From Podarcis cretensis (lineage: Eukaryota), in contig OX638150.1 of NCBI GenBank assembly GCA_951804945.1, positions 50,840,001-50,904,000 on the forward strand: a stretch of DNA of 64,000 nt, in the 5' to 3' direction. The position numbers and the translations under genes are program-made. The notes beneath the pieces were generated by a model. It was not told the origin of the DNA, did no database searches, and worked only from the letters and a program-made list of their open reading frames with translations. The stretch's first letter is position 1, and every line of letters begins with the position of its first letter. Shown here piece after piece: positions 15,288-63,422 of this stretch.

Positions 15288-15290
<3 letters not shown>

Positions 15291-23713: not shown

Positions 23714-24667
23714 TTATACCCTGCCCTTCCCGGCCAGAACTGGGCTCAGGGCAGCTAACACAAATAAAATTACAATAAAACAATAGGGGGGGAAAGGTTA
23801 ATTAAAATACGGGTTAAAATACAATTTAAAATTCAGCCTCATTTTAATAGTAGCCCATAAATCAAAACCATAAGGGGATGGAAATGTAAGGGTCAGACTG
23901 AGTCTAAACCAAAGGCCAGGCGGAACAGCTCTGTCTTGCAGGCCCTGCGTAAAGATGCCATCCCTCACCTTCACTCTGAAGTGGTACAGTCCCAGCAGGG
24001 ACTTTCTGAACATGTACATGATGGTGTTTCCTGCTTGGCGGGGGGTTGGACTCGATGGCCCTTGTGGTCTCTTCCAGCTCTATGATTCTATGATTCTACA
24101 AACACCACACAGAAACCAGGCAGGCAGGAGCTTGCATCATCCACAGTCCCTTTCTGTACCTGCTGCAGGAGTCCTGCTGCCACCCAGTTCAGGTTGTTCC
24201 TTTTCCCAAGCAGGGCTTCTGTACTGTTAATAATTGGGAGGGGGAGATTAAAAACAGGTGATGCTTCTCACAACTCAACCGCACCTGTAGAATCCCTACT
24301 TGCCATGCAGCTGTTAAATGCTCAGGGATGCTGCCAGAAAGAAAGAAAGAAAAAAAGAAGTGGCAAACATATTGGTTCTCTAAAAACTATGGAAAAAGCG
24401 GCTTTCCCTTTTACCGCCTCCTGTGACAGGCACCTGCCCTTCCCCGCAGAAGTCAGTAAATGTGCAGGATCTGGAATGTGGTTATGCAACCTTCCCACTC
24501 ATCCTTGCAGGGAGAGACAGCCGTCCCTGATTAATGGCTGCCTGGGAGATTTTGTGAGACGCACACAATTCCAAGGACTTGGCCCCTGCCCTTTCGGAGG
24601 ACATCTCCTCCATCAGCAAAGCGCTTGCTGTCAGCTCTCCTTGGCTTTTTTGCCTCTTAATTCTTAC

Positions 24668-25200
24668 CTGCTAATTAGCCGGGGACTTCTCGACTTGTTT
24701 AAGCTGCCTCGCTGCCGCTGCCGCTGCCGCTGCCGCCTCTGAGTTAATGATCAACCCACTGCGTTCCAGCTGCAGAAGCACAGGCTTGTTTGTGTCTATG
24801 TGTGCCGAGGACTGGCTGGCCCTCTCAGCTGTGTGCAAGTAAGTGTCTGTGAGCCAGGCCGGGCTCCGTTCCCTCGCTGCCATTCTCTCGCTGCTCTGTT
24901 TACTGCAGCCACACAGGCTATGTGCGAGTCCAGGCGGGAGTCAGATGAGTGTATTCGCTCACAGTGCTCCAAAACAAGAGAATATGCATCCAAGGCAACC
25001 CCTGCCGGGGTGGCAGCAGGCCAGCTGTAGAGATTTCTAGATGGAAATGAATGGGCCCTGCGGCCTGGCAGGGGGGCCAGCTGCAGGGAAAAAGAAACAC
25101 CTTCACACACAATAGGAAAATCCTGTGGGGAGCGGAGAGCAGTGCAGGCCACAAACAGCAACTCAGCTGACTGAGCTTTGGCTGTCGGCCACCTCTCAGT
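24668..25200 (-). promoter_or_regulatory. Candidate ARHGEF37 promoter / non-coding first exon (5' end uncertain)
   Basis: Locally GC/CpG-rich unique sequence with (GCCGCT)n, ending in a consensus minus-strand donor CAG|GTAAGA at 24668; the first coding exon has an acceptor, so an upstream exon is required. Confidence 0.5.
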
Positions 25201-28170
25201 CCAAGGCACTCCCTCAAAGCCTGTTTACTAACTGGCAAACCCTCAGCATGTTCCAGCATCAGCGCAATGTCCCGTGGGCAGCTTCATTTACTCTTATTAA
25301 CAAGCATGGTCTGGAGGTTTATGACAGCCATGAGCAAACAGGCTTTGCTTTAAAAAGAAAAGATGCCCCGGAAAGTATATAAACTGCGGTCTGTATTCCT
25401 GCCGCTATGCCTGACAGGTGGGGACATAAGCTCTCCCTAGAGGCTGATTTCTGAGCATTTGGTAATTACAGGTTTTTGCACCATAATAGCCCCAAATCAA
25501 AACAGATTTGATTGGGAAGGAGCACAAATTGTACCAGCGGAGGAGGGAGGTTTAATGTTTAATTCATGTTTATTAAATTTCACATCTTTATAATCATGCC
25601 AGGGGCGGCACAGGCGATGACTCCAAAAAGCAGCCAGCCAGCCAGGCTTCTCAGATTTGATAGCATGACTTTCTTGTGGCCTAGCTGGCTCTCTTGGCGG
25701 TTTTGTGATAGTGTGTGTGGCTGTAGGTAGGTTTCCTCAAGGTGACCTGGGAAGGTTGAGAAGAAGGAATGGCATAGCAGCATATCCCCCAGTTCTACCA
25801 GTCAAATCAGTAGAATCTGTTATAATTCACTGGCTTCAGCATATTTGCCTTGCATCTTCTTCCCAAATTTGTCTTCCTGTTGCTAACAAATCTAATGTCA
25901 ACAACATTTAACAAAGCTTAGCTTGCGTGTTTTTAAGGGGTGGGATTTGCTAGCCTGACACCATTCTTTACTGTATGGTAGCTGTTTTACTTTTTAGGCT
26001 GTTGGTTTTCAGCTGTGCTGTTACTTCTGCTTGCTTATTTTATTTTGATGAATTGCTTTAAGCAAAGGTTTCTACAGAAAGGCAACTTATAAGAACATGT
26101 TGCTGTTTTAAAAGTTCTAGCACTAGATGCAGCCTTGTATACTGGGATGATGCAAATGGGGGCCTGCAGATTAAAAATTAGATTTGCTGAGGAAATCCCA
26201 AAACAGGTCCAGAAGGAGACACTGGAGCACTGTCAACAGGACACAAAAAAACAGCCAAGGGCTGAAAAGGGGACTGGGCAACCAGGAGGGCATACTTTAA
26301 AGCAGAGATCACCAACTGTTTCCCACCAGTAGACACATATAGAACTTTGAGAATGTTCAGTCGGTGCTAGCCATAAAATGTCTGCTCTGTGAGCATGGCA
26401 TAATGACTTCCACATCTAAAAAAGCAGAAAGATGGGACTTATCCACACCTCCATTTGCCCCACTGCCCACCCGACCCCCAGAAAACCCTATCATTAGTGC
26501 TGAATTGGCACAAATGACACTCAAGTTTTCTGTGGATTGCTGTTTGTTCCGATTCAGCACAAAAGAGTAGGTTTTCCAGGGGAAAGCAGTGAGGGAAAGG
26601 CCAAACTGCTCAGACCCATTTCTAGAAAGCATGGAACAAGCAGAAAACTGCTCAGATCCATGCTTCCTATGCATGGGACAAGCAGAACTGTGGACGAGCC
26701 CATACAGGATTGCAAAATGCTTGTGGGCGTGACCCGTATCAGCTGGGGTAGGTGGCCCCACAGCAGAGCATCTGCTTTGCATGCAGGAAGTCCCGGGTTC
26801 AATCCCTGGCATCTCCAGATAGGGTTAGGTGGGAGACACCCTGTCTGAAATTCTAGAGGACCACTGCCAGTCATTGTATAGACACTACTCAGCCAATGGT
26901 CTGACTCAATATAAGGCAGCTTCCCATGTTCCATGCAGGAATAGTACAGCCATCCCCTCCCCATCCAAGGCATTGCCTCCCACACTGGTGATTAGATTCC
27001 AAGTGTACCTGTTTTTAGACAACACATCCTTGAATGAATGCTCAGTGGACAAATCTAACTGAACATAGGAACCCGCAATAGTAAGATATTGTGATTTAAC
27101 CTCTGGTATGATACTAGAATTGTTTGTCACATAAAAAAACCAAGATAAGGGCAGGTCGGGATACAAAGGTTGACAGTGCCCAGCAATTGAAGGGGGCTCT
27201 ATAGTTGGGTCAAAAAACCTCAGGATAGTCAGTACAGGTAAGTTAGGATAGCCAGGATATGAATGTAAGCTGCCCCACAGGCCTATTTTCTTATTGTATG
27301 TTCTTGGGCTGGAAAGAGACCTTGGCTATGCAGGCCGTATGCTGGGTAAGACTCTCATTTTAAACCTTCCAACTTACGAAGCTTGTGCTCTTTCCTCAGA
27401 AGGCCTAATCTATCACTGTCACTTTTTCCTCCAGGTCAGCTGAAGTTACTTTTTGCCTCTTTAATCACCACCCACCGCTATCTATCCTATTCAGCTGTCC
27501 AGCAATTACATTAGGAACAGCCATATAATGTCATAATATTCACGGCTTTTGCTTGCCTTCCAATTTTACTTACAAGCCTCCTTATTCACAAGAATCTACA
27601 TATTTCTTGGTCTTGGCCTTTTCCATTTATTAATACATAATGAAATATAAAAACTCATGTTTGCGGTCTTTTGACACTCCATTCTCATTATGAGGCCAGA
27701 TCAATGTAGTCCTCTTTGTTGAGTTATTTATTGATCCTCCTTCGAATTTTCAGGCCTTCCATTTAATTTCATAGCTTGTGCCATCTGGTCACCTTGCCCA
27801 TAATATGTTCCTCCACTAGCCCATCTCTGTGATCAATCTTTTTTGTCCCATTTTCTCATCAACCCAGCATTACTGGGCTCAACACCAAATGAATATTTTC
27901 CCTTTATAGTTTTACTGAGATTGTTCCTGTTATTTCAAATGCTCTTGAGCTTTCCAAAAGTATTAACACATCATCTTATTATTTTTCTTTAAATTTATCT
28001 AGCACTGACATTCTTAATATCTCTCACTGATCTCCTTAGTCCTGCAGCACTAGGTTGCCTCTATTCACAAAGCAATGGTTTTGCTTCAGACTATTTCCAT
28101 ATAAGCTTCAAGGGGAGCATGTAGTATTTCATGCATACCCAACTCAGCAAATGTTTAAGACGTGGAAGTT

Positions 28171-31378: not shown

Positions 31379-34300
31379 ATACACAGAATAACTGTTATAG
31401 CAAAGAATTATCACTCATTCCATAGATAAAAAAATTACTGAAAGATAGGGGAAAGTCTGTATCATGTGGTACTGCCTCTCTAACCACCTTAATTGTGTGG
31501 GTCACAGCATAAACAGCAAAAGAAAAAAAATTAAGAAGTCAATGAATATCAGCATAGGGGACCTAAGGTGAGCAGAACATATTAAATGTCAGCATTTTAG
31601 TTCCAAGAGGTGTATTTATGGGCTGGGAGCCTGTAATAGGCTTGGCTGTTCTGATGTCTGCCCATTTAATATAGGATAAAGGTCTCTTCGGTGATCAGGC
31701 TTGCACTCAGCAGAACATTATCTTTCAGAATTTTAAGCAACCTTCCCTCTAATTTCACCACCACCCACACAATTCGATCTAGTCCTTATGCATCCTCTGT
31801 CCTACATCTCTCTCCTCCCATCTGAACTTTATAAAAGAATGGAAAATCTTCACTGAAAACCTAATTGTTCTCTCCTGGGGCAGAAATGGTTGCTATTAAC
31901 TTTCATCTCTTGATCCTTTGAAAGGTCTCAATTGAGCAGTTTAAATGCAGCTAATCAGGGTGATAGGAAACCATCTCTTAAGGTTGCCAGTAACTGCAGT
32001 GGGTTGTTGCTTCCTGAACAGAGCATCGTCTCTTATGTTTTCCATTAGCTTCCTCTCCCAATCCAGTGCCTTCCATTTATTTTACTCCCTGCAATTTCCC
32101 CAAGGTTATCCTTAAGCAGTCTCACATCTAGAAGGATGGGGGAGGAGGACATAGAAAACAATCCTGGCCTCTCGCCATGTTGGCTAACGCAGCCAAAAAT
32201 AGTAAACAATGCCAATACTGTATGAACATAAGATAATGCAGCAACGCTGAGAGTCACTCCCACAGCATCCCTGGCAACTGCGCCATTACCTACCAATCAC
32301 AACACTGCACACTGCCCCCAAATTATCCATGCAGGAATGCATGATGACATCATGGAAACATTACCTCTAAACCTTAATGCATGGTGACCATACTCCCTTG
32401 AAGCGCCCATGGCACCTTGTCTATCAGATCCTCCCATGGCTCAGTGTGTATCAATACAGCAACTGATGCTTGCTGCCACGAGCTCTGGAGCTCTCCATAG
32501 AAAGAGGCTTGAACCCCCTCCCCTCCCACAGTCAGGGTTGCCATATTCCCAAATGTGAAAATCTGGGCAAAATTGTTGACCAGCTTTTCTCTTTAAAAAA
32601 ATCACCCTATTTGTCATACTCTGGTTTTTCCTGGACATTTTATCGATTCGGTGAAAACCTCTTTGACAAAGCCAGATCCAGAGTGGTAGGGTAGGGGGGA
32701 GAGGGAGGAAGTGCCATTCAAGTGAGAATAAACAAGCCTATTCCATAGACCAGTAGGCAGATCTGCATGTAAAATCCACAGCTAGTCTCTCCACTCCAGC
32801 CAAGGGCCTGGATCCCTTTGCTTTGCAGGCCCTACCTATACATTTGAATGCTCACAGATCTGTGGGTACAGGGAGTGGTGTTGCTCCATGTCTCTTAATA
32901 TATAAAATCTGAGATATCTGTTCTTGGTGTTTTATTCTGACTGGCTCCTGAGTCAAATGAGTTGTGTAGATAAGGATTGTATTGTCAGTAGAAATAGTAA
33001 ATGGCGTTTAAAGTTCTTTGTCGAATTCCTTTTTTTTAAAGAAAAAGAAAACAAAATGGCACAGGCATAGATGAGGGGCATTTTACTGCTTACTGTCTGT
33101 GATGGTATAAACACCATGCACAAGCAGTCTTCAACATCAGTGTAACATTTGTCACAGTAGATGCACTTGCTGGGGTGAAAAATGCTGTTTCTTCAGCAAA
33201 GCAGTTTCAGTGCTGGAAAACCCTGATTTCCCCCACATCTCAGGTGCTAGTTAGGGGAAAGACATTTTTATATGCGCTGTAACAAGTGCACATTCATTGC
33301 ACTGCAAAATGATGATCACCTGGAAAGGTCCATGGAGTCTTGCATTATTAGTCCAGTTAAATTAGAAGCAGTCTGAATTTAATGATGAGCAAAAAGCCTG
33401 GGAATTATAGGCAGAGCTTGATGATTAATACCTGGAAGCATACCGTAAATCTTTTCCCCACTTCCCTTTTCATTTGAAAGTTTTGATTCTCTCTCATTAT
33501 TTAAAGCAAGAATTCTATTCTTTAGCAACTTCTGCTGAGCTCTCAGCGTCCTCTTAATCACGTCTTTTAAAAGATGCTAAACAATGAAAGTATTACTTAG
33601 CTATTTTTCTTCCCCTTCTTACAGCAAACTGTGCAAAGGATGCAGGTGCTTCCATTGTTAAACGGGTTCCTTCTTTTAATTCTTGCTTTCATATTATGAA
33701 ATCATTTTAAGCCACAGACAAAGCCCTAAAAGATGCCTAGACTGGACAGTTAAGATACAGTGGTAAAAAGATGTAGAGGCTTTCATCTTCACAGCCCTGG
33801 TTCCAATCCAGACCTGGTTGGATAGAGGACATTGCTTTTTAAAGTATCCTTCATCCTGCATGAAATGGAGAATTGAATATACAGGCGTTAAGTTCTGGGG
33901 CCCCACACACATAAGTGAAATTGTATCCAGTGGGGAGCAACCTCTAAACACCCTCTCTGCCACTCTCTCTTCAATCCATGCCCAAAACACTGTGTTCATA
34001 AACATTCACAACCAGAATTAAAGCTCGAGGCCAGCTGGACGCTGGAGGACAAGTGGAAAAATGGCTGCTGTTGCTGTGCTACCGCGCATGCAAGCTGTTA
34101 GGTGGGGAGGCTGAGCAGCCTAAACAAAGTCCTGCTGCGCCCCTGGTCTCTTTGGGGCTTCCTCTGCCCTCACTGATGTCTTCAGGGGAGGGTCTTCTCA
34201 TGAAGAGGGCTTAATTCATCTGAGGAGTCTTCTCTGGATCCCCTCACCATTTGAATTTAAGTGTGCCTTCACTACAGATTGGGCCTTTTCAGTTGTGGTG

Positions 34301-34460
34301 CCCTGTGTACGGAATGCCCTCCCTAGGGAGGCTCACCTGCTGACAACTTTACTAGTACAGTGGTACCTCGGGTTACATACGCTTCAGGTTACATACGCTT
34401 CAGGTTACAGATTCCGCTAACCCAGAAATAGTGCTTCGGGTTAAGAACTTTGCTTCAGGG

Positions 34461-35236
34461 CAGTGGCGTAGCGTGGGGGGTGCAGGGGGTGCCAGCCGCA
34501 CCGGGCGCAACATTTTGGGGGGCGCACTCGCAGCTCTCTGCCCCTACCTGGCTCACTCACTCTCTCTCACAGTGCTGGTTGTGCGACTCCGATCCGAGCT
34601 GCCGGGTCGCTGCCCACTGTGCGGAGCGGAGAGAGAGCGAGGAAGGGACTATCTGGGGGAGGGACAGTGCAGCGGCTGCCCAGCGCAGCGCTGAGCGCGG
34701 GAGAGAACCACACCAGACCAGCCCAGGCAGCAGCAAGAAGAAGCTGGCAGCGGCGGCAGGTTAGGGGTTAGGGGCGCAAATTACTTGCCTTGCCCCGGGT
34801 TAGGTAAAGGTAAAGGTACCCCTGCCCGTACGGGCCAGTCTTGACAGACTCTGGGGTTGTGCGCCCATCTCACTTAAGAGGCCAGGGGCCAGCGCTGTCC
34901 GGAGACACTTCCGGGTCACGTGGCCAGTGTGACATCGCTGCTCTGGCCAGAGCCAGAGCCAGAGCCAGAGCCGCACACGGAAACGCCGTTTACCTTCCCG
35001 CTGGTAAGCGGTCCCTATTTATCTACTTGCACCCGGAGGTGCTTTCGAACTGCTAGGTTGGCAGGCGCTGGGACCGAGCAGCGGGAGCGCACCCCGCCGC
35101 AGGGATTCGAACCGCCGACCTTTCGATCGGCAAGCCCTAGGCGCTGAGGCTTTAACCCACAGCGCCACCTGCGTCCCCCTTTGCCCCGGGTTAGGGGGTG
35201 CAAATTAGGGTGCTGACAACCCACGCTACGCCGCTG
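34461..35236. mobile_element. hAT-type non-autonomous DNA element (interrupted by the Sauria SINE)
   Basis: 17-bp TIR CAGTGGCGTAGCGTGGG / CCCACGCTACGCCGCTG (1 mismatch); 8-bp TSD CTTCAGGG at 34453-34460 and 35237-35244. Confidence 0.85.
34805..35180 (-). mobile_element. Sauria SINE, full length, 15-bp TSD TTGCCCCGGGTTAGG
   Basis: Near-identical reverse complement of the 28.2-kb copy; TSD at 34790-34804 and 35181-35195. Confidence 0.9.
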
Positions 35237-35417
35237 CTTCAGGGTGAGAACAGAAATCGTGCTCCAGCCGTGCAGCAGCAGCAGGAGACACCATTAGCTA
35301 AAGTGGTGCTTCAGGTTAAGAACAGTTTCAGGTTAAGTACTGACCTCCGGGACGAATTAAGCACTATGGTAGTAGTAGTAGTAAATGGAAAAAATGAGGC
35401 CCTGAAGTATATTGGTA

Positions 35418-35421
<4 letters not shown>

Positions 35422-35469
<48 letters not shown>

Positions 35470-35471
35470 TG
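35422..35471. repeat. (CT)n(GT)n compound microsatellite
   Basis: Direct tandem repeat. Confidence 0.95.
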
Positions 35472-37429
35472 GTCATCCAGACAGGTTATATTTGACAGAA
35501 GAAATAATATTCTATTGGGAATGAGCTTTCCCCCACTTTCTCTCAACTTCATAAAGTTTTGCAAAAAAGAAAAGAAATTCCTTCTACAAAACTTGAGAGT
35601 TTGCATTCTTTGACATCTTAGAATGGCAGTAATAACAGGTATCCTTTGCACATCCAAAATAACAATTCCTCTGCTCCTTTTTGTTCATGAAAACACTCTA
35701 AACTGTAAAACAGCCAGAGCTGGGCATGTGGAAAATAATGACTCAAATATTCCATCAATTAACTCTAGGTGTAGCAACACGCTTTAACCACTAAGCCAAA
35801 GTGCAGTATCATATAAACATGATGAACAGATTTCAACACTGCAGTATTCCACCCATGCAACATTTCCTTGTTGCATATGATGATCTTTTTTATATTTAAA
35901 AGCCAGGATAATAATGCTAAGTACAAAGTTGGATATTGTCAGCTAAAATGTGTGAACATGATTCCTGTCTATTTAATAAAAAGCCTTACTTTTTGATCTG
36001 GGGCTTTACACAGACCCCACCATGCCATCCCACTTCCTGTCCCACTAATGTGTTGATTTGTACCCCAAATACACTTTCTTCCTTTCTACACTTTCCACGG
36101 CTTTCTGTGATGAATGCACAAAGGAAAAAGCATAATGGGGTTTCTATGCTACCCACTCACAACCCAACAACCACGCCTGTTGAATCACTTGCTTCCAGCC
36201 ACTGCTAGAAAGAATGATGCTTAATTGCAAATGGCACAATATCATTCACATTACTCAACATATATAACAACATCAGGAAAGCAGAGAACAATTTCCTCAG
36301 CTATCCAAGAAAGATTATAGGATGTAAATACTCAGTTCATCTAGCAGATTGTTGGTGCTTTCTGGTAGGGTGGAATCAAGATACCACAGGATGTGAACTA
36401 TTTCAGTACTTTTATGGAGATCTTCAAAAGAATGACACACACTATTCTATATGTGAGACACAGATTGGAGTATAAGTACTTTGGATGTGTTGGGTAAAGC
36501 AAATTTACTGTAAAGAAAGGAACAAATCCAACCCGCTTGGTTTATTTGCAGGAGACTTGTTTGCAAGTAAATAAGGAAATGTAGCACCATACATAGCACC
36601 ATTCCATGATATCTGCCGGAAGTTGCTGCCATCTCCAAACTGACATGCGTTCACCCTTGTACTTTGATCTCTACAACAGCACTCCTTACATTTTGATTGA
36701 TAGTTGAGGTATGTTTGCACTCTGCATCAGCAAACAATTGCATGATACTGTATATAGCTGAAGGTCAGCAATTGCTTGTGCAGCCCATGCCTTATCCCAA
36801 GTCCTGCCCCTGATTAGTGTTCCACCTCCATGTTTCTGCAAAAGTTAGAAAGTACTAACTTTCTAACAACATTAATTCCCTGGGTCAGGACAAACATTTG
36901 CACATATCTGGCATCTAACATTCCTCCTCTACTTGTAATAGCTTTACCACTAAAAAAAAAAAAAAGTATTAGATTTATACTCTGTTCTGACTCCAGAGTG
37001 CTCACAGTAGGAGCAGTATGGTTCCCAAGTGATCACCCCTTTAGGCACTATCACTGTGAGAAAATCCTAAAGTGCAGGCATCCTTCCTGACAACCTCCAT
37101 AGTCATGCCTCTTCTAAGATAATACAATAAAAATGAACTTTTGACCAAGGCAGACAGTATGGCTTCTATACCAAGGCAACCTTTCCCTCACCGCTCTATC
37201 CTCCCTACACCATTTACATCCAACTCAAAAACTTACCAATATGTCGTATCCAAAAGCTTGCTCACTGCTTTTGGATGGTCATAATAAAAGGGGTTTTGGA
37301 ATTTTTCAAAACAAAAGCAGCAGTGTAATACTTAGCCATGCACACTCATGAAAGCTCCTCCTCCTCTGGTCAGCTTGTCTGGTGAGTTTCTTTCTGAGAA
37401 AATCTTATATTCCACAAAAAAGGATTGGA

Positions 37430-39543: not shown

Positions 39544-40435
39544 TGGTCTTGTTTCAGGATGTGCAAGTGGGAAGTGTTCTGGTAGCTCCACACTCCTGAT
39601 TCCAGGGGGACGGGGGCGGGAAGCATCTACTCATCCTTTGCTTGAAGCATACATTCTTCCACCACAGCAAGACTGTCTCCCTTGCCTCAACTGTTATGGG
39701 CCCGAGTCCTTTTTAATGTGCATTCATGAGGCAATCCTGTTTTCCATACTACTTGCACGTGCAAATGTTTTAGGGAAGTCACACTGCTTCATTTCCAGTC
39801 AGTACATATCCCATAACTTCCTGCGGAAGTCCTGTACTACAAAAGTTTTGGCTTATTTTCGTCCCAGTTTTGTTGTACAATAGCCGCTTCACACAGCAAT
39901 CGTGTGATAGCATCACCAAAGTATCACAGAACAAACTGAAGCAGAACAAACCCACCAATAATGGTGTCAAGAACATTTTGCAGAATACACAACATGGCCT
40001 TATGTCTGGATGATACACCACTGGTGTTGAATCAACCGTAGAGGACTATTCTGCAAAAGGTAAAATGTGGTTGGGGCAAACTTCAATGATTATATAAGTT
40101 TTAAGAAATGCAATGAACTAATAGAACATCCCTGTCTTCAACTTGGATCCTGGCAAACATTATTTCACCCCCTACCTCTAATTTGTGCAGCTGTCAATAT
40201 TTCCATCACTACGTGTCACAAATTTGGGTCAGTTCCAGATAACCTGCTTATTGAGCATTCATTCTGATTGCTTTGCAGGGAAGTTAGATGACGCCATCCC
40301 ACACTTTTGAGTGCATCTTCCCATCACTTTCCTTACTGCAAAAACTCCTATCTTTAGGGGTAAACAGGTTTGTTGTGCAAAAGCTCCCAGTCAAACTTTA
40401 CTACACAGCCTCAGTTTGCTGGTATGTGACTGAAT

Positions 40436-40600
40436 CATAGCTGTCAACTTTCAGATTTGAAAATAAGGGATCAGCAGCCTCACCTGTCCTGGGGACAGTC
40501 TACGGGATATCTAACAATCCGTGATAGCAGCGGGAAGCAGCAGGAAACAGCACTGGAATAAGGGAATTTCCCGCAAAAAAAGGGAAGGTTGACAGCTATG
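40436..40600. mobile_element. hAT-type MITE (165 bp) ~1 kb upstream of the TLR ATG
   Basis: 13-bp perfect TIR CATAGCTGTCAAC; 8-bp TSD GACTGAAT at 40428-40435 and 40601-40608. Confidence 0.88.
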
Positions 40601-41223
40601 GACTGAATCCCACCCCAAAAAAGCATCAGTCTGGAAGCGCCTTTCGAGCATTTTATTTACAGCCAAAGCTTTGAAAACACATATACAGGCAGATGCTTAC
40701 CTTAGTTGTGCTCTTCTTTTCTGTTATCTCCACTGTTTAACCATCCATGTTTTACTCCACATTTGCTAAGACGCCAGTCTCTGGGAGTCGCTCTCAGTTT
40801 GCAGTATCTGATCTCTGTTTTTCCTGATTGGCCGAAAAGTCTGGAATGGAAGGCTTGCAAAGAACGCATTATGAAGGAGAGAGAGAAAATCTTGCTGAGC
40901 CTGTTTGAGCACAAGCTCTGCTGGAAACATTCCCTCACCTGTGCTGATGCAATTTAAAGATGTTTACGTGTGTCCTAAGAGGCTGTGTCCCTGCCATACA
41001 TACAAATTATTGGTTCTTGCTGGGAAGGTGCACCTTAAACCAAATGTTTTGCTTGGGTTAGAATGCTATACACACTTGCTTGGAGGTAAGCCCCACTGAA
41101 CTCAAGAACTTGAATTTGAGAAGGCATGCATAGGATCGCACCACACATCTACATATGACAGCATCAAGCAACTAAGAAACGTGTAAAACAAATTGCTCTG
41201 GCAAACAAGGAAACAACAATAAT

Positions 41224-41352
41224 TGTTAGAGCATGAGACTCTTAATGTCAGGGTTGTGGGTTGGAACCCCACCTTGGGCAAAAGATTCCTGCACTGCAGG
41301 CGTTGGACTAGATGATCCTCATGGTCCCTTCCAACTCTATGATTCTATGATT
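41224..41352 (+). mobile_element. tRNA-Lys-derived SINE with CR1 3' tail, ~240 bp upstream of the TLR ATG
   Basis: gagcatgagactcttaat..agggttgtgggtt tRNA-Lys(CTT)-like head; CR1 end ggtcccttccaactctatgattctatgatt. Confidence 0.78.
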
Positions 41353-41589
41353 CAGTTGTACATGCTTCGACTGAATTATAGTAAGGCGTGGAAACTAGTT
41401 GGCCATACCAGTTCCGTTTTCTTCCTGTACACATCTCCAGTGAGCCAGCACTTTCATGTTCCGCATTTGGAACATTTCTTCTCATTTTGTAATTAGCTGA
41501 CTTTCCGATGCAGCAATGCACATATTTCACATTGTCAGTTTACCCATTTTGCTCTCAAACTCACTGGGAGCAGTTACACAACAAGGAGG

Positions 41590-44457
41590 ATGTTTTCTCT
41601 GAGGCTTGTATCAACACTGCTCCTTTTCTTCAGCCAAGACCAAAGGGTGACACCTTACTCATTTGAGAAATGTGAGGTGCATGAAGTCTTGGGGAACAGA
41701 ACAAAAGTTCTGTGCTACAACAGGAACTTGAAAAATGTCCCAACCCACCTACCTGGCAAAGTTGATGCTTTGGACTTGTCTGAGAATAAAATTAGAAGTC
41801 TGTGGAGGACTGACTTCAGAAACCTGGGTCACCTTCAAGTTCTGAACATTTCTCAGAACAAAATAGAACACATTGAAGGAGGTGCTTTCATACACACAGG
41901 CTACCTGGAGTTCTTGAACCTCACTGCAAACCGGCTGACTCTTCTCTCCAGCTCCATGTTTGATGGGCTTACAAATCTCACGGTCTTGATGCTTGGCAAC
42001 AATCAAATACTCAAGATTGAACCTTATGCCTTTGCCCATTTGGAGAAATTAAAGGTAATTGATTTATCTTCAAACAGATTGTATACCATGAATGCTATGC
42101 ATGCTGTGTTTAAAGTGGAATCCTTGCAGGAACTGCACATCAAAGACAATGATCTGCAGAATTTATCAACCAAACAAATCATTAGTGTACCTGAGCAGCT
42201 TCGTGAACTGGATGCATCTCATAACCCTATTTCTCTCATTGATGTTACAACTTCAGTATTACAAAGCCTTTCTTCACTTGATTTATCCTTCTCTATGCCT
42301 AATATCTCCATTATATGGTTGATACAAGACCCTTGCTTCCTAAAAGGCTTAAAGACATTATTTTTAGGAGGTATAGCTATGAAACCACCAGCTATCTCAG
42401 AGGTGATCCAAATGATCAATTGCACCTCGCTAGAGGCTATCCACCTAAACCAGTTACAGCTGACTGAAACAGATGGACTTATAGAGCAGGTATGTCTAAG
42501 GCATGGAAATGTTGAGACTCTTAACTTACAGCACAATTTGTTCACAAGTGTTAATGAAGGAGCCTTTGAAAACTGCACACATCTAAGGTATCTGAATATG
42601 GCATTTAACAAGCTGAAAGTGCTGCCAATGACACTGTTTCAGTCCTTGCATTCTTTGAAACTTCTTTCTTTGGCAAACAACAAGTTCACTGTGGTGCCAA
42701 ATGCTACCTCTAACATGCCATCATTAGAATGCCTGGATCTTAGTTTTAACAAGATCTACAGAATTCTTCCAGATGACTTTGCCCATCTAAATAATTTGAA
42801 GAGTCTCTATGCCAATGGAAACCGTATCTCTCATGTCCATTCAAATATCTTCGGTGACCTACACAGCTTGCAAGAACTGAATCTTGAAATAAACCTTTTA
42901 ACAGAAATCAACGAACCTTTCCCAGAAAGCTTAAAGAATCTGGAAACCCTGATACTAAGGCAAAATAAACTGGATTCGATAAAAAAAGACATTTTAAAGA
43001 ATCTTACTTCTCTGCTGGTTCTTAACCTGGCAGACAATCAGATTGCTGCTATAGAACCTGGAGCCTTTGAAGGTTTGAGTAGCCTGCAGAGCCTTGTTCT
43101 TGCTAGCAACAAGATCACCAAAGACACTTTCCAGGAAGGGCTATTTCAAGGTTTAAGCTCTTTAGTAGAACTAGACCTTTTCAGCAATTATATCAGTTAC
43201 AAGTCCTCCAAAATGCTTGTCAATCCTCCCTTTAAACTGCTGAAGTCCTTAAACAAATTTAATATAAACAGCCAACGTCATAACGGACTTGAAAATTTTC
43301 CAGTTAACTTCTTACAAGGACTGGAGTCCATTGTGCAAATCCACGCAGGCAACTTGGCAATATCTTTTTTGGATCCCAAGACTTTTAAATATACCCCTAC
43401 GCTTGAAGAGCTTGATTTGAGTGATAATTCTCTTAACAATGTCAGCAATATGCTCTTCTGGCCTGTACCAAACCTGAGGGAACTGCACCTCAATAAAAAC
43501 GGACTAAATTCACTCAGCTTTGTTTCCCATGGCAACCTTTCCAAGTTAACTCTTTTCAGAGGAGCTGAAAACCAAATAGACGTTATCACAAAAGAACAAA
43601 TAAGAGCTTTGCCTGCCCTTCGTTTTCTAGATCTCAGGGAAAATACGTTTGCCTGTTCCTGTAGTAATGAAATGTTCCTCAACTGGTCACTAAAGGATCC
43701 TAAAACTCAGGTGCTCCATTTCTACCAGTACATCTGTGCTTCCCCTTCAACACAAAAGGGGCAGAAATTGTGGACCTTTGAGACGTCTTCTTGCATAATC
43801 GACTATGGGTTTATCCTGTATATCACAAACACATCTGCAGCAATTTTACTGATGCTCGTCTGCTTCATTTATCAGTGGAGGTTGCACATGATCTACAGTT
43901 ACCACCTACTACTTGCATACTTCATTGACAAGAGGGAAAAAAGGAAGGAGCGAGTCATGGGTTATGCTTACGACGCTTTCCTTTCTTACAACACACACAA
44001 TGAAGAGTGGGTGATAAATGACCTCCTGCCAGTGCTAGAAAACCAGTATCATTGGAAGCTCTGTCTTCATCACCGAGACTTTGAGCCAGGACGGTCCATC
44101 CTGGAAAATATTGTAAACAACATCTACATGAGCAGGAAAACCATTTGTATCATAAGTCGCCACTACCTGGAAAGTGAGTGGTGCTCCAAGGAGATCCAGG
44201 TGGCCAGCTTTCGCCTTTTTGATGAACACAAGGATGTCCTGATTCTCATTTTTCTGGAGGACATTCCCAGCGAGTACTTATCACCCTACCATAGAATGAG
44301 AAAACTTATTAGGAAGAAGACATATCTCAAATGGCCCCAGGATGAGAAGGAAGTTGCACTGTTTTGGCAAAAGCTCAATATGGCTATGAAGACAGGTGAA
44401 GGAAAAGAAGAGGAACACCCCATTTTGCCTAGATTTGCTTCAGATGAAGTGCCATAA
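41590..44457 (+). CDS. TLR22: Toll-like receptor, TLR11/13/21/22 family, most like TLR22 (955 aa, single coding exon)
   Basis: Signal-peptide-like N-terminus, LRRNT (C...VLCYNRNL..VP), >20 LxxLxLxxNxL repeats, LRRCT (NTFACSC...YICASP...C), TM helix at ~43804-43872, TIR box1 YDAFLSY, BB-loop LCLHHRDFEPG, SEWCSKEIQVASFRLFDE..DVLILIFLE, LSPYHRMRKL. TLR call is secure; the paralog name is less so. Confidence 0.9.
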   Translation: MFSLRLVSTLLLFFSQDQRVTPYSFEKCEVHEVLGNRTKVLCYNRNLKNVPTHLPGKVDALDLSENKIRSLWRTDFRNLGHLQVLNISQNKIEHIEGGAFIHTGYLEFLNLTANRLTLLSSSMFDGLTNLTVLMLGNNQILKIEPYAFAHLEKLKVIDLSSNRLYTMNAMHAVFKVESLQELHIKDNDLQNLSTKQIISVPEQLRELDASHNPISLIDVTTSVLQSLSSLDLSFSMPNISIIWLIQDPCFLKGLKTLFLGGIAMKPPAISEVIQMINCTSLEAIHLNQLQLTETDGLIEQVCLRHGNVETLNLQHNLFTSVNEGAFENCTHLRYLNMAFNKLKVLPMTLFQSLHSLKLLSLANNKFTVVPNATSNMPSLECLDLSFNKIYRILPDDFAHLNNLKSLYANGNRISHVHSNIFGDLHSLQELNLEINLLTEINEPFPESLKNLETLILRQNKLDSIKKDILKNLTSLLVLNLADNQIAAIEPGAFEGLSSLQSLVLASNKITKDTFQEGLFQGLSSLVELDLFSNYISYKSSKMLVNPPFKLLKSLNKFNINSQRHNGLENFPVNFLQGLESIVQIHAGNLAISFLDPKTFKYTPTLEELDLSDNSLNNVSNMLFWPVPNLRELHLNKNGLNSLSFVSHGNLSKLTLFRGAENQIDVITKEQIRALPALRFLDLRENTFACSCSNEMFLNWSLKDPKTQVLHFYQYICASPSTQKGQKLWTFETSSCIIDYGFILYITNTSAAILLMLVCFIYQWRLHMIYSYHLLLAYFIDKREKRKERVMGYAYDAFLSYNTHNEEWVINDLLPVLENQYHWKLCLHHRDFEPGRSILENIVNNIYMSRKTICIISRHYLESEWCSKEIQVASFRLFDEHKDVLILIFLEDIPSEYLSPYHRMRKLIRKKTYLKWPQDEKEVALFWQKLNMAMKTGEGKEEEHPILPRFASDEVP

Positions 44458-45058
44458 AGGAAGTAGTCTGTGGGGGGAAATGTCTTGTATGTATATTATA
44501 CCTCGTTTATACAGTGGCATTACAAACAGATAACAACAATAGCCACTGGCACTGACAGCCACCATTCTGTCCCCATCAGGTATGTTTCACAAGGCGAGTT
44601 GCGATGAAACTTTTTCTTTCATGGAATAATAGATGTGGAAAAAATATAGCTGGAGAGCGTGGCATTCAGTGGTGGTGGGGGGGAATGGTTTGAGCAGGAT
44701 ACGAGATTCCTGCAAATCCAAACTTGCAATCTGATCCTATGCATACTTACTTAGAAGCAATTGCCACTATGTTCAATGGTCTTACTCCCATGTAGTTTGC
44801 ATAGGATTACAGGCTGCAATCCTGTGCATCTGAGTATAATCCCCATGAACACAGTGGGACTTACTTCTGAGGAAACCTCCACATCTCTGGGTGGGCAGGC
44901 AAGGAAAGGACATGTGTAGCAATCGTCTGGCGACTGTAGGTGGTGGGTAAATAATATCTAAACAATGACACTCCTAAACCGCCATCGTACCATATGTTCC
45001 TAGACCATATTTTGTTCTAAAAGGAGACCCACCCACAGATACGAAAGATTGAAAGTAG

Positions 45059-45124
45059 AATAAAATGGGAACTTGAGTTACAAAAGAATCGCATTGCCAG
45101 CCAGCACGACAATGCCAAAATAAA
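45059..45124 (+). terminator. Candidate polyadenylation signals of the TLR gene (AATAAA at 45059 and 45119)
   Basis: Two AATAAA hexamers ~600-670 nt after the TLR stop, followed by T/GT-rich sequence. Confidence 0.4.
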
Positions 45125-48100
45125 ATTAACAAAATCATTTCTGTTCCTGTATGGAATTATGATATACAGGAGGGCATATACTTCAGGTTTTTATAAACCT
45201 TTTACTAAAGTTATATCTTCAAAAATATTTGGCTGAATGCACCTTTATTTACCAAAGTCTGCTGTTGTTCTTATTGTTCTCTTCTGTTGAGAGATGAATG
45301 TGCCGTGCAATTAATTCTCAAGCATACTACCATGTTCTCCTTCCCTCCTCTTGTCATCTCAGATATGTGCCATTTCCCCCCAGCTATGGCTATAGTGCCG
45401 CCTGCTTTAAAGGTAATTGCATGGGATCCACCATGAAGCGCTCTAGAGTAGAAGCAATCCTGAAAAAGGAACACCAAGGTGTAAATGTGATACAGAAGAT
45501 CCAAGTGGGGTAGAAAGGAAAACATCTCAAGGGCAAATGGTTAGGCAACCAAACCTATGCTCTGGGATCTTCCAAAACAAGGGGGTGGCAATATGGATTG
45601 GAAAAAGAAACTTGGTCTAAGAGTCATAAAAACTACCTATTTGGATCTAACAATAATTCCTAATCAGCAGGGATGAGAGAGGGGTGAATATCTCATGCTA
45701 CTTACTGCATATTTGGGGTAGATATATTGCATATAATCTGTTGTTTCTGGAGGTAGAAAGTAGGTCTAGTTGAACCATATGCACTACAAAGCACTTATTC
45801 CAAGGTGCTTTGGGGATAAATTCAAGCTGATTGCACAGCTCCTGGTCTATGGAATTCCCTTCGCACCATAGGAACCAACTCCTAGGGGCCAAGGTCCCTT
45901 CAGCCGCCCCATAAAATATTTGAGGGGGCCACCCCCCAGTTGATGGCCATTGCCATTCAAATAGTGTGGGTGTGACCCATCATGTAATTAATTATGTGGG
46001 GCAGGGCTTACCTCCCCCCCCCCCAAATGTGAATCTGGCACAGTCGTTATATAGTTTGGAAACTATCTATGCTGAAGATGCACTGCTTTACCTTGGCCTC
46101 TGACACTTGAGATATGTGCTTTCAGCTCCCACCCTATTCCTGTGGCTGTAATTTGTTTCAACTCTTTTTAATATTGAATTTTAAATTGTTGTAACTCACT
46201 CTGGGACCTGCTGGGGGAAGGGCAGGTAATAACAACTGATGCTGCTGAACAATTTTGCTGTTTCATATTAACTTTTACCAGTTTCATTTCTGTGTAATGC
46301 TTTTTGTTTATATTGAGCTGCATTTTTAAAGTTTCAAGCCTCTTTGTCTGTTTTCTTTAAGACGTGACTCCCAAACTGTGGGCTGGGGCACACCATAATG
46401 GGAATCTCTGGCACAACGTGCACTATGACTGACAGGCATGAAGGAATCCTAGAAATCACCAGAGGGCAGGACATTCAAACACAGTTTTGGATTCTCTCTG
46501 TTTCTCATTTTCCCAATCTTAAAGCCAGTTGTCACATTTCCACAACAGTATGAGATTATTATTTTTATGTCCTCATGAAAATTTGTCAGCATTCTAGTGC
46601 GCATTTCTCCTAATGGTCACATTTTTGGATGCAAGCCATTTCCCTAAACATAATTTTATTTCCACTAATATATGGAAATTGTGCAAACTTTTGCCTTTTT
46701 GTACACATGATTAGTCATTGAAAAAATATGGAGATCTGCAAATTTTGAAGTCCATCGTTTACTATTTAGCTATCTCTGAATTCTGTCCCTACATTTCGTT
46801 GTGTACCATTTGACTTCTAACAGCATAAACCCTTCTCTTCATCTGCAGCCAAAAGCACAACAGGCAGCTCTAAAGTAGCCTCATAAACAAGCTCCTGTCT
46901 CCTGTAGTAATAATGCACCAGCCAAGGTCACAGGAAAGCCACAGATCTACTTCAGAATTGAAGCTATTAGCAGGGGCTGTGCCCTTGTATAAAGGGCAGA
47001 GTGCTGACATAATGGCATGGCAAGGGGGAGGGGGCGGTGGAGAGGTTGCTTGCGCATGCTAGCACAGAATGGGCGTCCTGAAAGCAATATCCTGCAAAGT
47101 CTGTGAATCCAGTCATCCAGAGCTAATTTTATAGAGAACTACTCAGCTGCAAGCAGCATGGGAAACACAAGGCCCCACAAGCAAAAGCATGTGCATGGTG
47201 GTGGTGTTTTTTAAGGTTCCTGCAGTGGCACTGATAATTATCTCACCCTATTATGCCAGCTCCAAAATGTGAAACTTAGAAATCCAAGCAGAGATGCTGT
47301 ACAATTTTTGCTTTTTTTCTGCGGGGGACGCAGGGACGCATACCCCTAAATATTTTGTGACTCTAATGGGAGAAGAAACTGAAAAAGTTAAAATTTTGTT
47401 TCTTCTCTAACATGGTGAATCATCAGTTCCGTTGCTACCCCCGATGGCAGCCACATTTCCTGTCATGGTGTTTCCTGAGTCTCAGATGCAATGAGTGTAC
47501 CCCTAAACATTTTTGAAGAAAAAAAAAGCACTGAGCAGACGTAATGTACAGTAGGCAACTTAGGACACAAGAGCGTTGGTTCAGGTAGACTACCTGGTTT
47601 TGCTGCAAGAGGAAAGCTGTCTCTCACCTTTGAACAAAAACGCACAGGAGCGATATGCTCCAGTGTGTGTGATGGGAAATGCACATCCTTCACAGGAACA
47701 AAAACGCAAGCACACATCGAAAGGAAGTGTTCTAACTTTGGCACAGACAACAAAGTTGCTTCGGTTCACCCCACTTTTGATGTTTTACAGCATTTTAAAG
47801 GGTTTTATGAACACCAACCCAGTACAGCAGAAAGGCACTTGTCCTAAAAAATACTGGGTTGTAGCCAATGCTGTGTGAGCAGGGATCTGCTCATTCAACT
47901 GGATTTCCCCTTCCTCTCCTCTCCTTGCAAGTCCCCAAAAGCTGTTCCAGAGGGTTGGTTCTTGGGGGGGGGGGGCACACACACTGCAGTGAAGAAGAGG
48001 GGAAGTTCTGCTGTGCAAGTAAAAGTCTCTTGTGCAAGCAGAACAGCAGCGCTGGATGCCAAATCTTTTTTTCTCCTTGAGAAGAAGAAGTGAAATAAAC

Positions 48101-55199: not shown

Positions 55200-56312
55200 C
55201 ACAAGAAAATGTTGGCTGAATCAGGCCAAATACCCATCTAGTCCAGCATCCTGTTCTTACAGTAGCCAACCAGATGTTCACAAGCAGGACCTGAGTGGAA
55301 TTCATCTTTTTCACAGCTGCTACATACTGGATCAACATCTTTGAGCTATCCACTATACCCCCAAGTTCTTGTTCTTGGTGAATCACCATCAGTTCAGGCC
55401 TGATTAGTTTACATGTGAAATCAGGAAGATGAGAGATGAGAGATAGATAGACGATAGATATTTGTGCCAATCTGCATCACTTTGCACCTGCTTATGCTGA
55501 ATTGCATTCACCATTGTACTGCCCATTCACCTAATTTGGTAAGATCCTCTTGATCCCTTTTTGCTTAACCACCCTAAACAATTTGGTACCATTGACCTCA
55601 CTGCTCACAACTAACTCTAGATCATTTATGAACAAGTTAAAAAGCACAGGTCTCAACACATCTCCTTTGGGGACTCTACTTTCTATACCCCTCCACTGTG
55701 AGAACTGTCCATTTAGGGGACCTCTCCTCTTATTCTGCAACAGCTAAACATACTCAGGAGTTTTTGGTAAGGGACTCTTATCAAAAGCTTTTTGAACAAG
55801 TTTGCAATGTCAGCTGGGTCACCTTTATCTATATACTTGTTGACACTCTCAAAGAACTGTACAGAGTTAGAGAGATAGTGAGAGACTCTTGCAAAAGTCA
55901 TACTGGTTCTGCTTCAGAAAGACATATTATTCTATGTGCTTGGTATTTTTATCTTTAGTAGCAGTTTTACCAGAACAGATGTTTAGTGAACTGGCATGTA
56001 ATATTTAAGATTCCCCCAGGATTCCTTTTTTAAAATTGGTGTTACCTTGGCCATTTTTCAGTCCTCGGGTATGGAGCCTGCTCTTAAGTTACATATTTTT
56101 GTTAGACTATCAGCAATTTCACATTTGAGTTATTTTAGAGCTCTCAGGTGGATGCCATCTGGTGATTTGTCAGCTTTTAATTTGTCAATAAGACCTAGAA
56201 ATGTGTCTCTTGTCACTGCAACTTGCCTCAGTTCCAAGGACTCCATTCTCTGTAACATTTGTTCGGGAACAGATATTTGCCATACATCTTCGGTCGCAAA
56301 GACAGATGCAAA
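55200..56312 (-). mobile_element. Decayed CR1 LINE (RT region to 3' end)
   Basis: Minus-strand peptides FASVF, FFESVNKYIDKGDP, NGQFSQW...VPKGDVLRPVLFNLFINDLE, TKLFRVVK, LGGIVDSS. Confidence 0.75.
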
Positions 56313-58277
56313 TGTACTAGAAAGTGATGGATATCAACAATTGCTTGATACTGAAAGCATATGCTGACGACTTGGTAATATCAGTGGAGGACCCAAAACA
56401 AAGTATCGACAAAGTCCTGGTACTTCTAGAGGAATTTGGGAAAGTAGCGGGCTTTAAGTTAAACAAAACGAAAACTAAAATGATGGTTAAGAACATGGGA
56501 GAAGATCTAAGGAGGCAGTTAGAATTTCAATCGGGAATCAAAGAAGCAAAAAAGGTAAAATACCTAGGAGTGTAGCTAACGATGAAAAATATAAATTTAA
56601 TGGCTGATAACTACACAAATACCTGGAAGGAAATCCAAAAGGAATTAGATATTTGGAATAGGATAAAACTCTCCTGGTGAGGTAGAATGGCAGCAATTAA
56701 GATGTGCATACTGCTGAAACTATTATTCTTATTCCAAAATGTCCCGGTGATTAGAGGAAGTGTAATATTCAAAAATTGGCAGAAAATTCTCTCTAAATTC
56801 ATATGGCAAGGCAAAAGACCAAGAATTAGATTTAAATTGTTAACGGATAGAAAAGACAAAGGAGGATTCTCGGTCCCAAATTTGAGATTGTATTATGAAG
56901 CCTCGTGCCTTTGCTGGCTTAGAGAATGGATTACCTTAAAAAATACAGATCTGCTAGACTTAGAAGGCTTCGATTTAAGATTTGGTTGGCATGCTTATCT
57001 CTGGCAGAATAAGGAGAAGGTGCATAAAGGCTTCTCAAACCACATTATCAGAGGAACACTGTTAGAAGCATGGGAAAAGTATAGAAAACTATTGGGGAAA
57101 AATACCCCCTGGTGGCTATCGCCTATTGATATCTTAACTATTAAAAAAATAAACATGGAAGGTGAGAGATTGACCTATGAAGATCTCCTGGTAAGATCGG
57201 AAAGAGGATGGAAAATTAGACCATACGAAGAGTTAAAAAGCAAATTAACATGTTGGTTGTAGTATCATCAAATTAACGTCTTATGGAAGGAAGATAAAAA
57301 GATTGGAATGAATGAGAAAAAATCTAAGTTCCAGGTAGAGATAATAGAAAGCAAAACAAAACTCCTATCTAAAATGTATAATCAGCTATTAGATTGGGAC
57401 ACCAAGGACGAAGAGGTCAAGGAGGTTATGGTAAAATGGGCAACAGACATTGGATATAATTTGGATTTTGACAAATGGACGAGGTTGTGGACTAAAGGAA
57501 TGAAATTTACAGCCTGCACTACCCTTAGAGAAAATATGGAAAAGATGATGTACCGTTGGTACATCACCCCTGTGAAATTGCAAAAAATGTATAAGACTGG
57601 TGATAAAAGGTGTTGGAAGTGTAAATCCAAAGAAGGAAGTTTCTACCACTTGTGGTGGAAATGTGAAGAAGTTAAAAAAAAATGGGAATCCATATACAAC
57701 GAACTGAAAGAAATACTTAAATACACTTTCGTTAAAAAGCCCGAAGCCTTCCTTCTGGGAATGATCGGAGATGAGATTAAGAAAGAAGACCATATAATGT
57801 TTCAATACGCAACTGTAGCTGCCAGGATTCTGTTAGCACAAAACTGGAAAACCCCAAATATCCTGACCGTTAAAGACTGGCAAATTAAATTATTTGAATA
57901 TATGGATTTGGCAAAAATGACGCAGAATATCAGACAGCAAAAAGGTACAAAGTTTATTGACGATTGGACCAAATTCATAACATACATGGAAACAAACTCT
58001 AGAGACATAAAAATCACAGTAGGTTTAATATAACCCTTGTGATGTGTAGATGATATAAAATGAAAAACTGCAGAATGGATGTAATATTTACATAACCCAA
58101 AACCGAGATGGAGGGAAGTCAACCGTTATTTGTTGTTAATTAATGTTTGTCTTCTGGTTTGTTCATGTTTTTTGTGTTGGTTGATGTTTTTGTTTTTGTT
58201 TTTGTTTTGTTTTTTGGTGTGTGCTGTTTCTTTTTCTTTTTCTTTTTTGTTGTTTGGTTATAGAAAATGAATAAAAA
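56313..58277 (+). mobile_element. 5'-truncated L1-clade LINE, ORF2 3' half (RT YADD to CCHC knuckle) + 3'UTR
   Basis: AYADDL, FGKVAGFKLNKTKT, KYLGV, GGFSVPNLRLYY, CWKC..EGSFYHLWWKC; three ORF-track pieces share one frame separated by point stops; GT-rich 3'UTR and AATAAA near 58270. Confidence 0.9.
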
Positions 58278-62660: not shown

Positions 62661-63315
62661 CTCCGCTTTAGTGGTTTGTAGATAGTAGCGTCGGACTTTT
62701 TCCTCCTCATTTTTATTTTGGAACTTATTTCTTAGGTTCTTTTTTTTTGGGGGGGGAGGACACGATCGTGACAAATTATAATAAGCACCTTCACGGTGTA
62801 GGGTTTTGATTCGTATTTTTGTAATAGGGTTTCTATCCTGTCTTGGCAGTGATGAGTCTGCAATGCTTGGTTCAGTTTTGAAAATGTTCTCTCCCCCACC
62901 CCCCGACTCTCTTAATCGTTCGCTTAGTAGTGTTTGTAGTACATAAAACGCCAGGCTGCCTGGTAATAGATGGATAAAGAGGCCATTTGTATTGTTTGGG
63001 GGGGATCCTTATGTGATCTGTAGAGAAACTGCACCTAAGCTCATTTCTTGCATTCACAATTACCTTGTTCAAGAGGCAATGAAGGCACCTTCATCTAAGT
63101 GTTTAAACACTTTCTGGGAATAATGGATTAGTGTTAGTATCCCTAGGATGGATATTTACAGAAGTCGGCACTGTGTGGAATATGTTTGCGGAGCTTGTCA
63201 CTTACCAGGATATTCCTGTGGAAGGCTTTCCCATGCCCTCAAATATGCTGTAGTGGAGAAATGCAGTCCTCTTGCTCCAATAGGATCTCTGACCCATATT
63301 CCCTCTTCACTGCAG

Positions 63316-63422
63316 GAAGTAGCTGTGAAGTTGGAGTCTCAGAAGGCCAGACATCCCCAGCTGCTATATGAAAGCAAACTATACAAGATTCTGCAAGGGG
63401 GAGTTGGCATCCCTCACATACG
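63316..63422 (+). CDS. CSNK1A1: Casein kinase 1 alpha, coding exon 2 ([36 protein letters not shown]); gene continues beyond window
   Basis: tgCAG acceptor, CG|GTAAGA donor, 107 nt; VAVK catalytic lysine, HPQLLYE CK1 motif. Confidence 0.97.

Follow-up and report, generated by a model that had tools for sequence, protein, structure and literature searches.

Toll-like receptor 22 (TLR22), an innate immune receptor, has been listed as a sensor of double-stranded RNA (dsRNA) (Liu et al., PMC6946030), and another survey describes it as acting at the cell surface. For reptiles, Liu et al. 2020 (PMC6946030) compiled 11 TLR22 sequences; the reference is 952 aa long, omega is 0.395 and one site is positively selected. 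Their Table S2 (PMC6946030) records TLR22 in Chelonia, Chrysemys, Pelodiscus, Gavialis, Pogona (on an unannotated scaffold) and the pit viper Protobothrops, and enters '-' for Anolis, Gekko and Alligator sinensis; lacertids lay outside the sample, and Pogona and Protobothrops each have separate entries for TLR13, TLR21 and TLR22. According to later papers, including a frog paper, birds and mammals have lost TLR22. Here we describe a receptor gene at 41590-44457 (+) of a 64,000-nt stretch of the lizard Podarcis cretensis (GenBank assembly GCA_951804945.1, contig OX638150.1, positions 50,840,001 to 50,904,000, forward strand; hereafter the window), which is in all probability the lacertid orthologue or co-orthologue of vertebrate TLR22, in the TLR13/21/22/23 branch of the TLR11 superfamily.

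The literature already covers this lineage, including its survival in reptiles and its disappearance from birds and mammals, and the find is an ordinary one apart from the misleading name that the gene carries in databases. An initial annotation of the window had implied that the gene belonged to an under-described system. This implied novelty was not borne out, reptile TLR22 having been catalogued by Liu et al. 2020, as the same annotation had correctly cautioned might be the case. Its guess that the function of the gene in reptiles is uncharacterised agrees with a 2023 review of sea turtles, which reports TLR22 in Chelonia mydas and describes the ligands of reptilian TLR21 and TLR22 as not fully characterised. 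The practical value of the find is therefore modest, and it would not surprise a TLR specialist.

Protein architecture and phylogenetic placement

A scan for open reading frames (ORFs) in the window recovered a single uninterrupted ORF of 955 codons plus stop in one exon at 41590-44457 (+), whose start codon at 41590 is the first ATG within an open frame beginning at 41497; no runs of N occur anywhere in the window. The predicted protein has the TLR22 layout, namely a type I protein of ~950 aa with a single-domain leucine-rich repeat (LRR) ectodomain, LRRNT and LRRCT caps, one transmembrane (TM) segment and TIR boxes 1-3. The putative ligand-binding ectodomain (residues 1-733; 41590-43788, +) comprises a signal peptide, read from the sequence as an N-terminal hydrophobic leader, the LRRNT with Cys28/Cys42, an LRR solenoid with ~20 regular LxxLxLxxN motifs across residues 58-690, and the LRRCT with the cysteine cluster C689xC691...C716...C735. 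Pfam assigns 9 LRR_8 stretches (E 4.8e-82), and the protein contains 14 NxS/T sequons for N-glycosylation. Just one hydrophobic TM segment is present, at about residues 740-762 (43807-43875, +), where a Kyte-Doolittle peak (740-760) coincides with a long helix (739-787) in the predicted structure. It is followed by the TIR signalling domain (residues 793-931; 43966-44382, +; Pfam E 8.1e-25), with box 1 YDAFLSY, box 2 RDFEPG including the BB-loop proline, and box 3 FW. The uninterrupted 955-aa LRR-TM-TIR frame proposed in the initial annotation is thus confirmed by the ORF scan, Pfam and the sequence architecture, and all of the motifs that it quoted are present in the protein: YDAFLSYNTHNEEWV at residue 794, WKLCLHHRDFEPG at 822, EIQVASFRLFDE at 868 and LSPYHRMRKL at 897 in the TIR domain, and SQRHNGLENFPVNFLQGL at 561 in the ectodomain. 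Across 28 members of the clade described below, 121 columns are invariant; the cysteines of LRRNT and LRRCT are among them, as are TIR boxes 1 (YDAFxSY), 2 (RDFxPG) and 3 (FW).

A protein search ranks reptile, amphibian and lungfish proteins first, at 47-96% identity. The closest is a Podarcis muralis model named 'LOW QUALITY PROTEIN: toll-like receptor 13' (96%), followed by other squamates (64-71%), turtles and alligator (61-63%), a caecilian (55%), lungfish (51%) and a frog (48%); source-named teleost TLR22 proteins lie at 38-41%, mammalian TLR13 at 33-34% and fish TLR21 at 31-32%. Matches closer than 40% come solely from fish, lungfish, amphibians and reptiles, and the mammalian matches are all TLR13. 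The exact window protein is absent from a collection of 15 billion protein sequences. Full-length squamate orthologues measure 946-960 aa, and the turtle, crocodilian, Pogona and snake counterparts (61-71%) form one clade with the window protein, which is the same lineage as the reptile and amphibian TLR22 of Liu et al. 2020 (PMC6946030). The reference length given there likewise matches that of the lizard protein.

The lineage is conserved in lungfish, amphibians, turtles, crocodilians and many squamates. Within squamates, TLR22-type proteins were found in lacertids, Pogona, anguimorphs, a teiid (as a truncated model) and many snakes, and the protein search returned no TLR22-type match from Anolis, Sceloporus, Phrynosoma or geckos. 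Together with the '-' entries of Liu et al. for Anolis and Gekko, these protein matches suggest that TLR22 was lost repeatedly within squamates.

The main maximum likelihood (ML) tree was computed with IQ-TREE under LG+C20+F+G4 with posterior mean site frequencies (PMSF) from 41 rows and 970 columns, with lungfish TLR3 as outgroup and three source-named teleost TLR22s as anchors. In this tree, the window protein belongs to a lungfish-amphibian-reptile clade supported at 100/99, whose internal order mirrors the species tree. Its sister is a teleost clade (100/100) containing all three named TLR22s, and the union of the two is supported at 100/99. The lizard gene and the teleost TLR22 genes (fugu, zebrafish, catfish and others) thus share a clade, a length of ~950 aa and the LRR-TM-TIR layout, as well as the tryptophan of WKLCLHHRDF and the signatures ASFRLFDE and LSPYHRM; the lizard coding sequence (CDS) is intronless. 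They differ in sequence, as the identities above indicate, and in copy number, the lizard gene being single-copy here and many fish having several copies.

Two other members of the branch have to be weighed against this placement. A true TLR13 orthologue, sensing a segment of bacterial 23S rRNA as mouse TLR13 does, would be in keeping with the name 'toll-like receptor 13' that NCBI gives to the counterparts and with the mouse TLR13 ectodomain being the best solved match by both sequence and fold. In the tree, mammalian TLR13 groups instead with proteins of Sceloporus, Phrynosoma and Dendropsophus (99/99), so that lizards own a separate TLR13-type gene, and a constraint that unites the window clade with TLR13 lowers the log-likelihood by 102 units and is rejected by the approximately unbiased (AU) test (p 1.5e-9). 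Mammalian TLR13 is also more distant in identity than teleost TLR22. TLR13 identity is therefore rejected by both tree and AU test and is extremely improbable. A TLR21 orthologue would sense CpG DNA, as TLR21 does in chicken and fish, and TLR21 is the branch member whose retention in birds and reptiles is established. TLR21 shares the TLR13 subfamily, a similar size and similar TIR boxes with the lizard protein, and its TIR motifs are close (ASYRLFDE against ASFRLFDE, and LCLHHRDFEPG in both). However, fish TLR21 forms a separate clade with another lizard gene, from Elgaria, and a shark protein (100/98), and the union of the window clade with TLR21 is rejected at a cost of 89.7 log-likelihood units (AU p 6.4e-9; chicken TLR21 lay outside the data set). 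Elgaria carries both types, a TLR22-type protein (P0003) and the TLR21-type protein (P0069). Tree and AU test alike reject a TLR21 identity, whose probability is close to negligible.

Residue signatures follow the same division. The tryptophan at position 822, in WKLCLHHRDF, occurs in 16/16 displayed rows of the TLR22 clade, and TLR13 and TLR21 rows carry F, S, Y or H there (F in mouse TLR13). ASFRLFDE is a signature of the TLR22 clade, in contrast to ASMKMFYE in rodent TLR13, including the mouse protein, and ASYRLFDE in TLR21. The initial annotation had assigned the gene to TLR22 from TIR motifs of this kind and had named phylogeny among its checks. In the alignment, those motifs do separate the TLR22 clade from TLR13 and TLR21, and the tree places the protein in the TLR22 clade with both alternative unions rejected. 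A tree of the TIR domain alone is consistent with this, splitting TLR13 and TLR21 from the rest at 95/96; it does not resolve the teleost and sarcopterygian groups as sisters.

The guess that automated pipelines would label the gene TLR13 proved right as well. The NCBI name 'toll-like receptor 13' is attached to the Podarcis, Elgaria, Varanus, snake, turtle and alligator counterparts, and it covers three types of lizard gene, namely the TLR22-type, the TLR21-type (Elgaria XP_062996193.1) and the TLR13-type (Sceloporus XP_042331418.1). Because one name is shared by three paralogue types, it is uninformative, and for this gene the RefSeq label is a naming artefact that lends the TLR13 identity no weight. 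The gene should accordingly be read as TLR22, and since the same RefSeq name stands on three lizard paralogues, counts of TLR repertoires taken from annotation go wrong. Fish 'TLR13' naming is also unreliable: a mudskipper paper reassigns fish genes of this name to tlr21, tlr22 and tlr23.

Several observations weigh against the assignment to TLR22. Source-named TLR23, TLR19, TLR20, TLR11 and TLR12 all lay outside the tree sample, and the position of TLR23 relative to the lizard gene is taken from the literature. Nested in the teleost group, beside the named TLR22s, is an acanthomorph clade bearing the author names 'TLR13a' (Siniperca) and 'TLR13b' (Oreochromis); cluster look-ups in this second acanthomorph clade for a source-named TLR23 gave only 'TLR13', 'TLR13a' and 'TLR13b'. 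Furthermore, percomorph tlr22 adjoins sh3kbp1-map3k15-cnksr2, as the mudskipper paper describes, whereas the lizard gene lies beside a RhoGEF gene and CSNK1A1. These differing neighbourhoods mean that synteny gives no support for orthology with the functionally tested fish genes, and strict orthology is carried by the phylogeny alone. No paper mentioning both TLR22 and CSNK1A1 came up in a literature search. As a separate observation, the acanthomorph 'TLR13a'/'TLR13b' clade consists of large tandem families; a single 90% cluster, for instance, comprises 50 cichlid proteins.

These points bear above all on hidden paralogy, in which the lungfish-tetrapod and teleost TLR22 clades would be old duplicates reciprocally kept at different loci, so that the ligand of the lizard receptor could differ. 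Sister sarcopterygian and teleost clades fit orthology and reciprocal loss alike, and two facts given above, different neighbourhoods and a TIR-only tree that leaves the two clades unresolved as sisters, count in favour of such duplicates. Conversely, a published survey reports that loci of this TLR branch are generally poorly conserved, and relocated genes are therefore to be expected; published surveys treat TLR22 as one lineage from jawless fish to reptiles; and no species in the sample has one copy of each type. Hidden paralogy is thus considered unlikely. In its fullest form, this reading would turn the 'TLR22' of tetrapods and lungfish, at the RhoGEF-CSNK1A1 locus, into an old paralogue of the dsRNA-tested teleost gene and into an amniote nucleic-acid sensor with a TLR13-like ectodomain, lost independently by birds, mammals and some squamates, and this too is unlikely. 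The RhoGEF-CSNK1A1 interval offers a short and well-marked place for tracing and dating the losses of TLR22 in birds, mammals, Anolis and geckos.

Transcription and selective constraint

Reads and contigs from public runs were placed on 39600-45500. They come from a relative that is ~98% identical in DNA and shares ~0.5 of sampled words; another organism among the public runs, with a share of 0.99, is probably the species of the window itself, represented by DNA. In run X1 of the relative, one contig spans 41573-42716 with 18 differences and a second spans 42703-45388 (2688 nt) with 55 differences, at a depth of 9-11 over 41573-45388. The only indels in these contigs lie at 44677 and 45040, both 3' of the stop codon, which leaves the CDS free of indels. 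The unique flanks at 40979-41175 and 41373-41569 have zero depth, the latter in all four runs. The contigs of the relative thus show a transcript-like pattern, the RNA nature of the small run X1 being guessed. In addition, three stranded RNA-seq runs of the relative, of which ~12% each was read, contain sparse CDS reads at a depth of 0.2-3. In nearly all of these reads the first mate lies on the - strand, which in the usual libraries denotes RNA of the + strand, the sense of the gene. These reads and contigs indicate low-level transcription of the TLR22 gene in a close relative of the window species.

The second contig continues past the CDS, and 44458-45388 (+) is likely 3' untranslated region (UTR); no AATAAA poly(A) signal stands directly before the contig end at 45388. 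At the other end, the first contig begins at 41573, where a putative splice acceptor (cAG, 41571-41573, +) lies 16 nt 5' of the ATG. Such an acceptor could possibly imply an upstream non-coding exon, although the indication is weak and no such exon was found.

Comparison with the relative also allowed selection to be gauged. Among 27 listed CDS substitutions, 12 are synonymous and 15 nonsynonymous, which over 615 synonymous and 2250 nonsynonymous sites gives a ratio of nonsynonymous to synonymous change (pN/pS) of ~0.34; this ratio covers the 27 listed substitutions, and a further 79 listed differences across the mapped stretch stand outside the count. The value agrees with the omega published for reptile TLR22 (PMC6946030). 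The ectodomain holds 31 of the 35 residue differences from the Podarcis protein, and the other 4 are found in the TIR domain and tail. Taken together, these comparisons point to moderate purifying selection on the TLR22 gene, with changes falling mostly in the ectodomain.

The evidence of this section has its own weak points as an argument for a working TLR22 gene. The expression data come from a relative rather than from the window species, the run with the full-length contigs is guessed to be RNA, the depth of the RNA-seq runs is very low, and the RefSeq model of Podarcis muralis bears the flag 'LOW QUALITY PROTEIN', which could reflect a fault of its assembly or of the species itself. The last two points, along with the patchy squamate retention noted above, are also what would be seen if the gene were a decaying or functionless relic heading for the loss seen in birds, mammals, Anolis and geckos. 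Yet the ORF runs through 955 codons without a break, conservation extends to every structural cysteine and TIR box, the contigs of the relative lack any CDS indel, the pN/pS value is not near 1, and full-length orthologues of similar size occur across squamates. A relic is accordingly highly unlikely. The initial annotation had staked its claim of a retained receptor partly on expression and selection, and the transcript-like contigs, the sense reads and the pN/pS value all came out in its favour.

Predicted fold and candidate ligand

An AlphaFold2 model was built from an alignment of 28 clade members. Its mean predicted local distance difference test (pLDDT) score is 81.7; the ectodomain reaches ~90, the TIR domain 55-68. 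In a Foldseek search, the top solved match of the model is the complex of mouse TLR13 with single-stranded RNA (ssRNA), 4z0c (E 8e-33, template modelling score 0.83 on the target, root-mean-square deviation 3.6 A), and lower-ranked fold matches include TLR7, 8 and 9 at ~0.7 and TLR3 at ~0.6. The sequence alignment to 4z0c likewise runs from end to end of the ectodomain (residues 23-723 against 1-699, E 4.7e-61), and both proteins would form a single-domain horseshoe. Because mouse TLR13 is the sole branch member with a solved structure, it is the best solved match by default, which counts against reading the match as evidence of TLR13 identity; mouse TLR13, a sensor of a 23S rRNA segment, is a separate paralogue at 27-34% identity. 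The predicted match thus argues for a common fold and not for common ligand specificity.

By analogy with other members of the branch, the lizard receptor would sense microbial or viral nucleic acid, and by analogy with teleost TLR22 the likeliest ligand would be dsRNA. Ligand binding may then dimerise the ectodomain and bring the TIR domains together, and the joined TIR domains would recruit a TIR adaptor and so give rise to interferon and NF-kB/MAPK responses. In fugu, this adaptor is reportedly TICAM-1/TRIF, a result credited to Matsuo et al. 2008.

Other considerations count against a dsRNA ligand. The role of a surface sensor of long dsRNA, cited in the initial annotation, is carried over from fish. 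Reports on fish TLR22 conflict, one describing a dsRNA sensor at the surface and another an endosomal receptor by which NF-kB is suppressed and MAPK activated; one review, on sea turtles, ascribes recognition of CpG DNA to TLR22; and the nearest solved fold binds ssRNA rather than dsRNA. Because the fish reports disagree, the review gives CpG DNA and the nearest solved relative binds ssRNA, the case for dsRNA as the ligand of TLR22 in reptiles appears evenly balanced between yes and no. A lacertid with an intact, transcribed copy would be a reasonable candidate for a first ligand test of a reptile TLR22.

Genomic surroundings

The TLR22 gene occupies a divergent intergenic space; its neighbours, a RhoGEF gene on the left and CSNK1A1 on the right, are both read away from it. 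On the right, CSNK1A1 is represented by exons 1 (62332-62451) and 2 (63316-63423), together spanning 62332-63423 (+). Exon 1 corresponds to residues 1-40 of CK1-alpha (E 1e-19, as against only ~1e-7 for delta and epsilon), and exon 2 matches CK1-alpha at E 4e-18 with a gtaag donor directly 3'; the two exons are near-identical to solved CK1-alpha chains. A GC-rich stretch (~0.48-0.50) over 60-64 kb is probably the CpG island of the CSNK1A1 promoter.

On the left, a RhoGEF gene with DH and SH3 domains extends over 361-18669 (-). Its DH exon at 11330-11716 (-) has a Pfam E of 1.9e-14 and matches solved DH domains, and weaker Pfam pieces on the same strand are DH at 16500-16694 and SH3 at 361-696. 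The gene is presumably ARHGEF37, a name inferred from its domains and position. The gene order of human 5q32 would fit ARHGEF37 as the neighbour of CSNK1A1. A search of the PDB with the DH exon returned generic DH domains only (for example, those of intersectin and P-Rex) and no specific name. The placement between ARHGEF37 and CSNK1A1 proposed at the outset therefore holds for CSNK1A1 exons 1-2 and for a RhoGEF flank, but the name ARHGEF37 was not confirmed. The spacer from the last recognised RhoGEF exon to the TLR gene contains two further GC-rich patches, at 24000-26000 (0.49) and 34000-36000 (0.51), one of which may be the RhoGEF promoter.

A high-copy dispersed repeat at 40388-40584 attracts hundreds of RNA reads per run, with a contig word depth of ~4800 against the 9-11 on the TLR CDS, and two further high-copy repeats flank the gene at 41176-41372 and 44722-44918. 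The read depth at 40388-40978 and at 41176-41372 is that of high-copy repeats, 98% of the reads continuing into unlike sequence. The reads at 40388-40584 are not assignable to the locus, because they derive from a high-copy repeat and nearly all run into unlike sequence. An apparent joint 41347>44849, which would skip 3501 nt, was considered as an intron and rejected: its two sides are separated by 25 foreign letters and its ends are TG..GA, which marks it as a repeat artefact. No repeat pair framing the gene was found within 40200-45200, and no Rfam families were found within 38-48 kb. Reverse transcriptase-like open frames at 14068-14850 (+), 55534-55743 (-) and 56321-58030 (+), one of them of 256 aa (57263-58030), are probably debris of long interspersed nuclear elements (LINEs) in a RhoGEF intron and in the spacer between the TLR gene and CSNK1A1.

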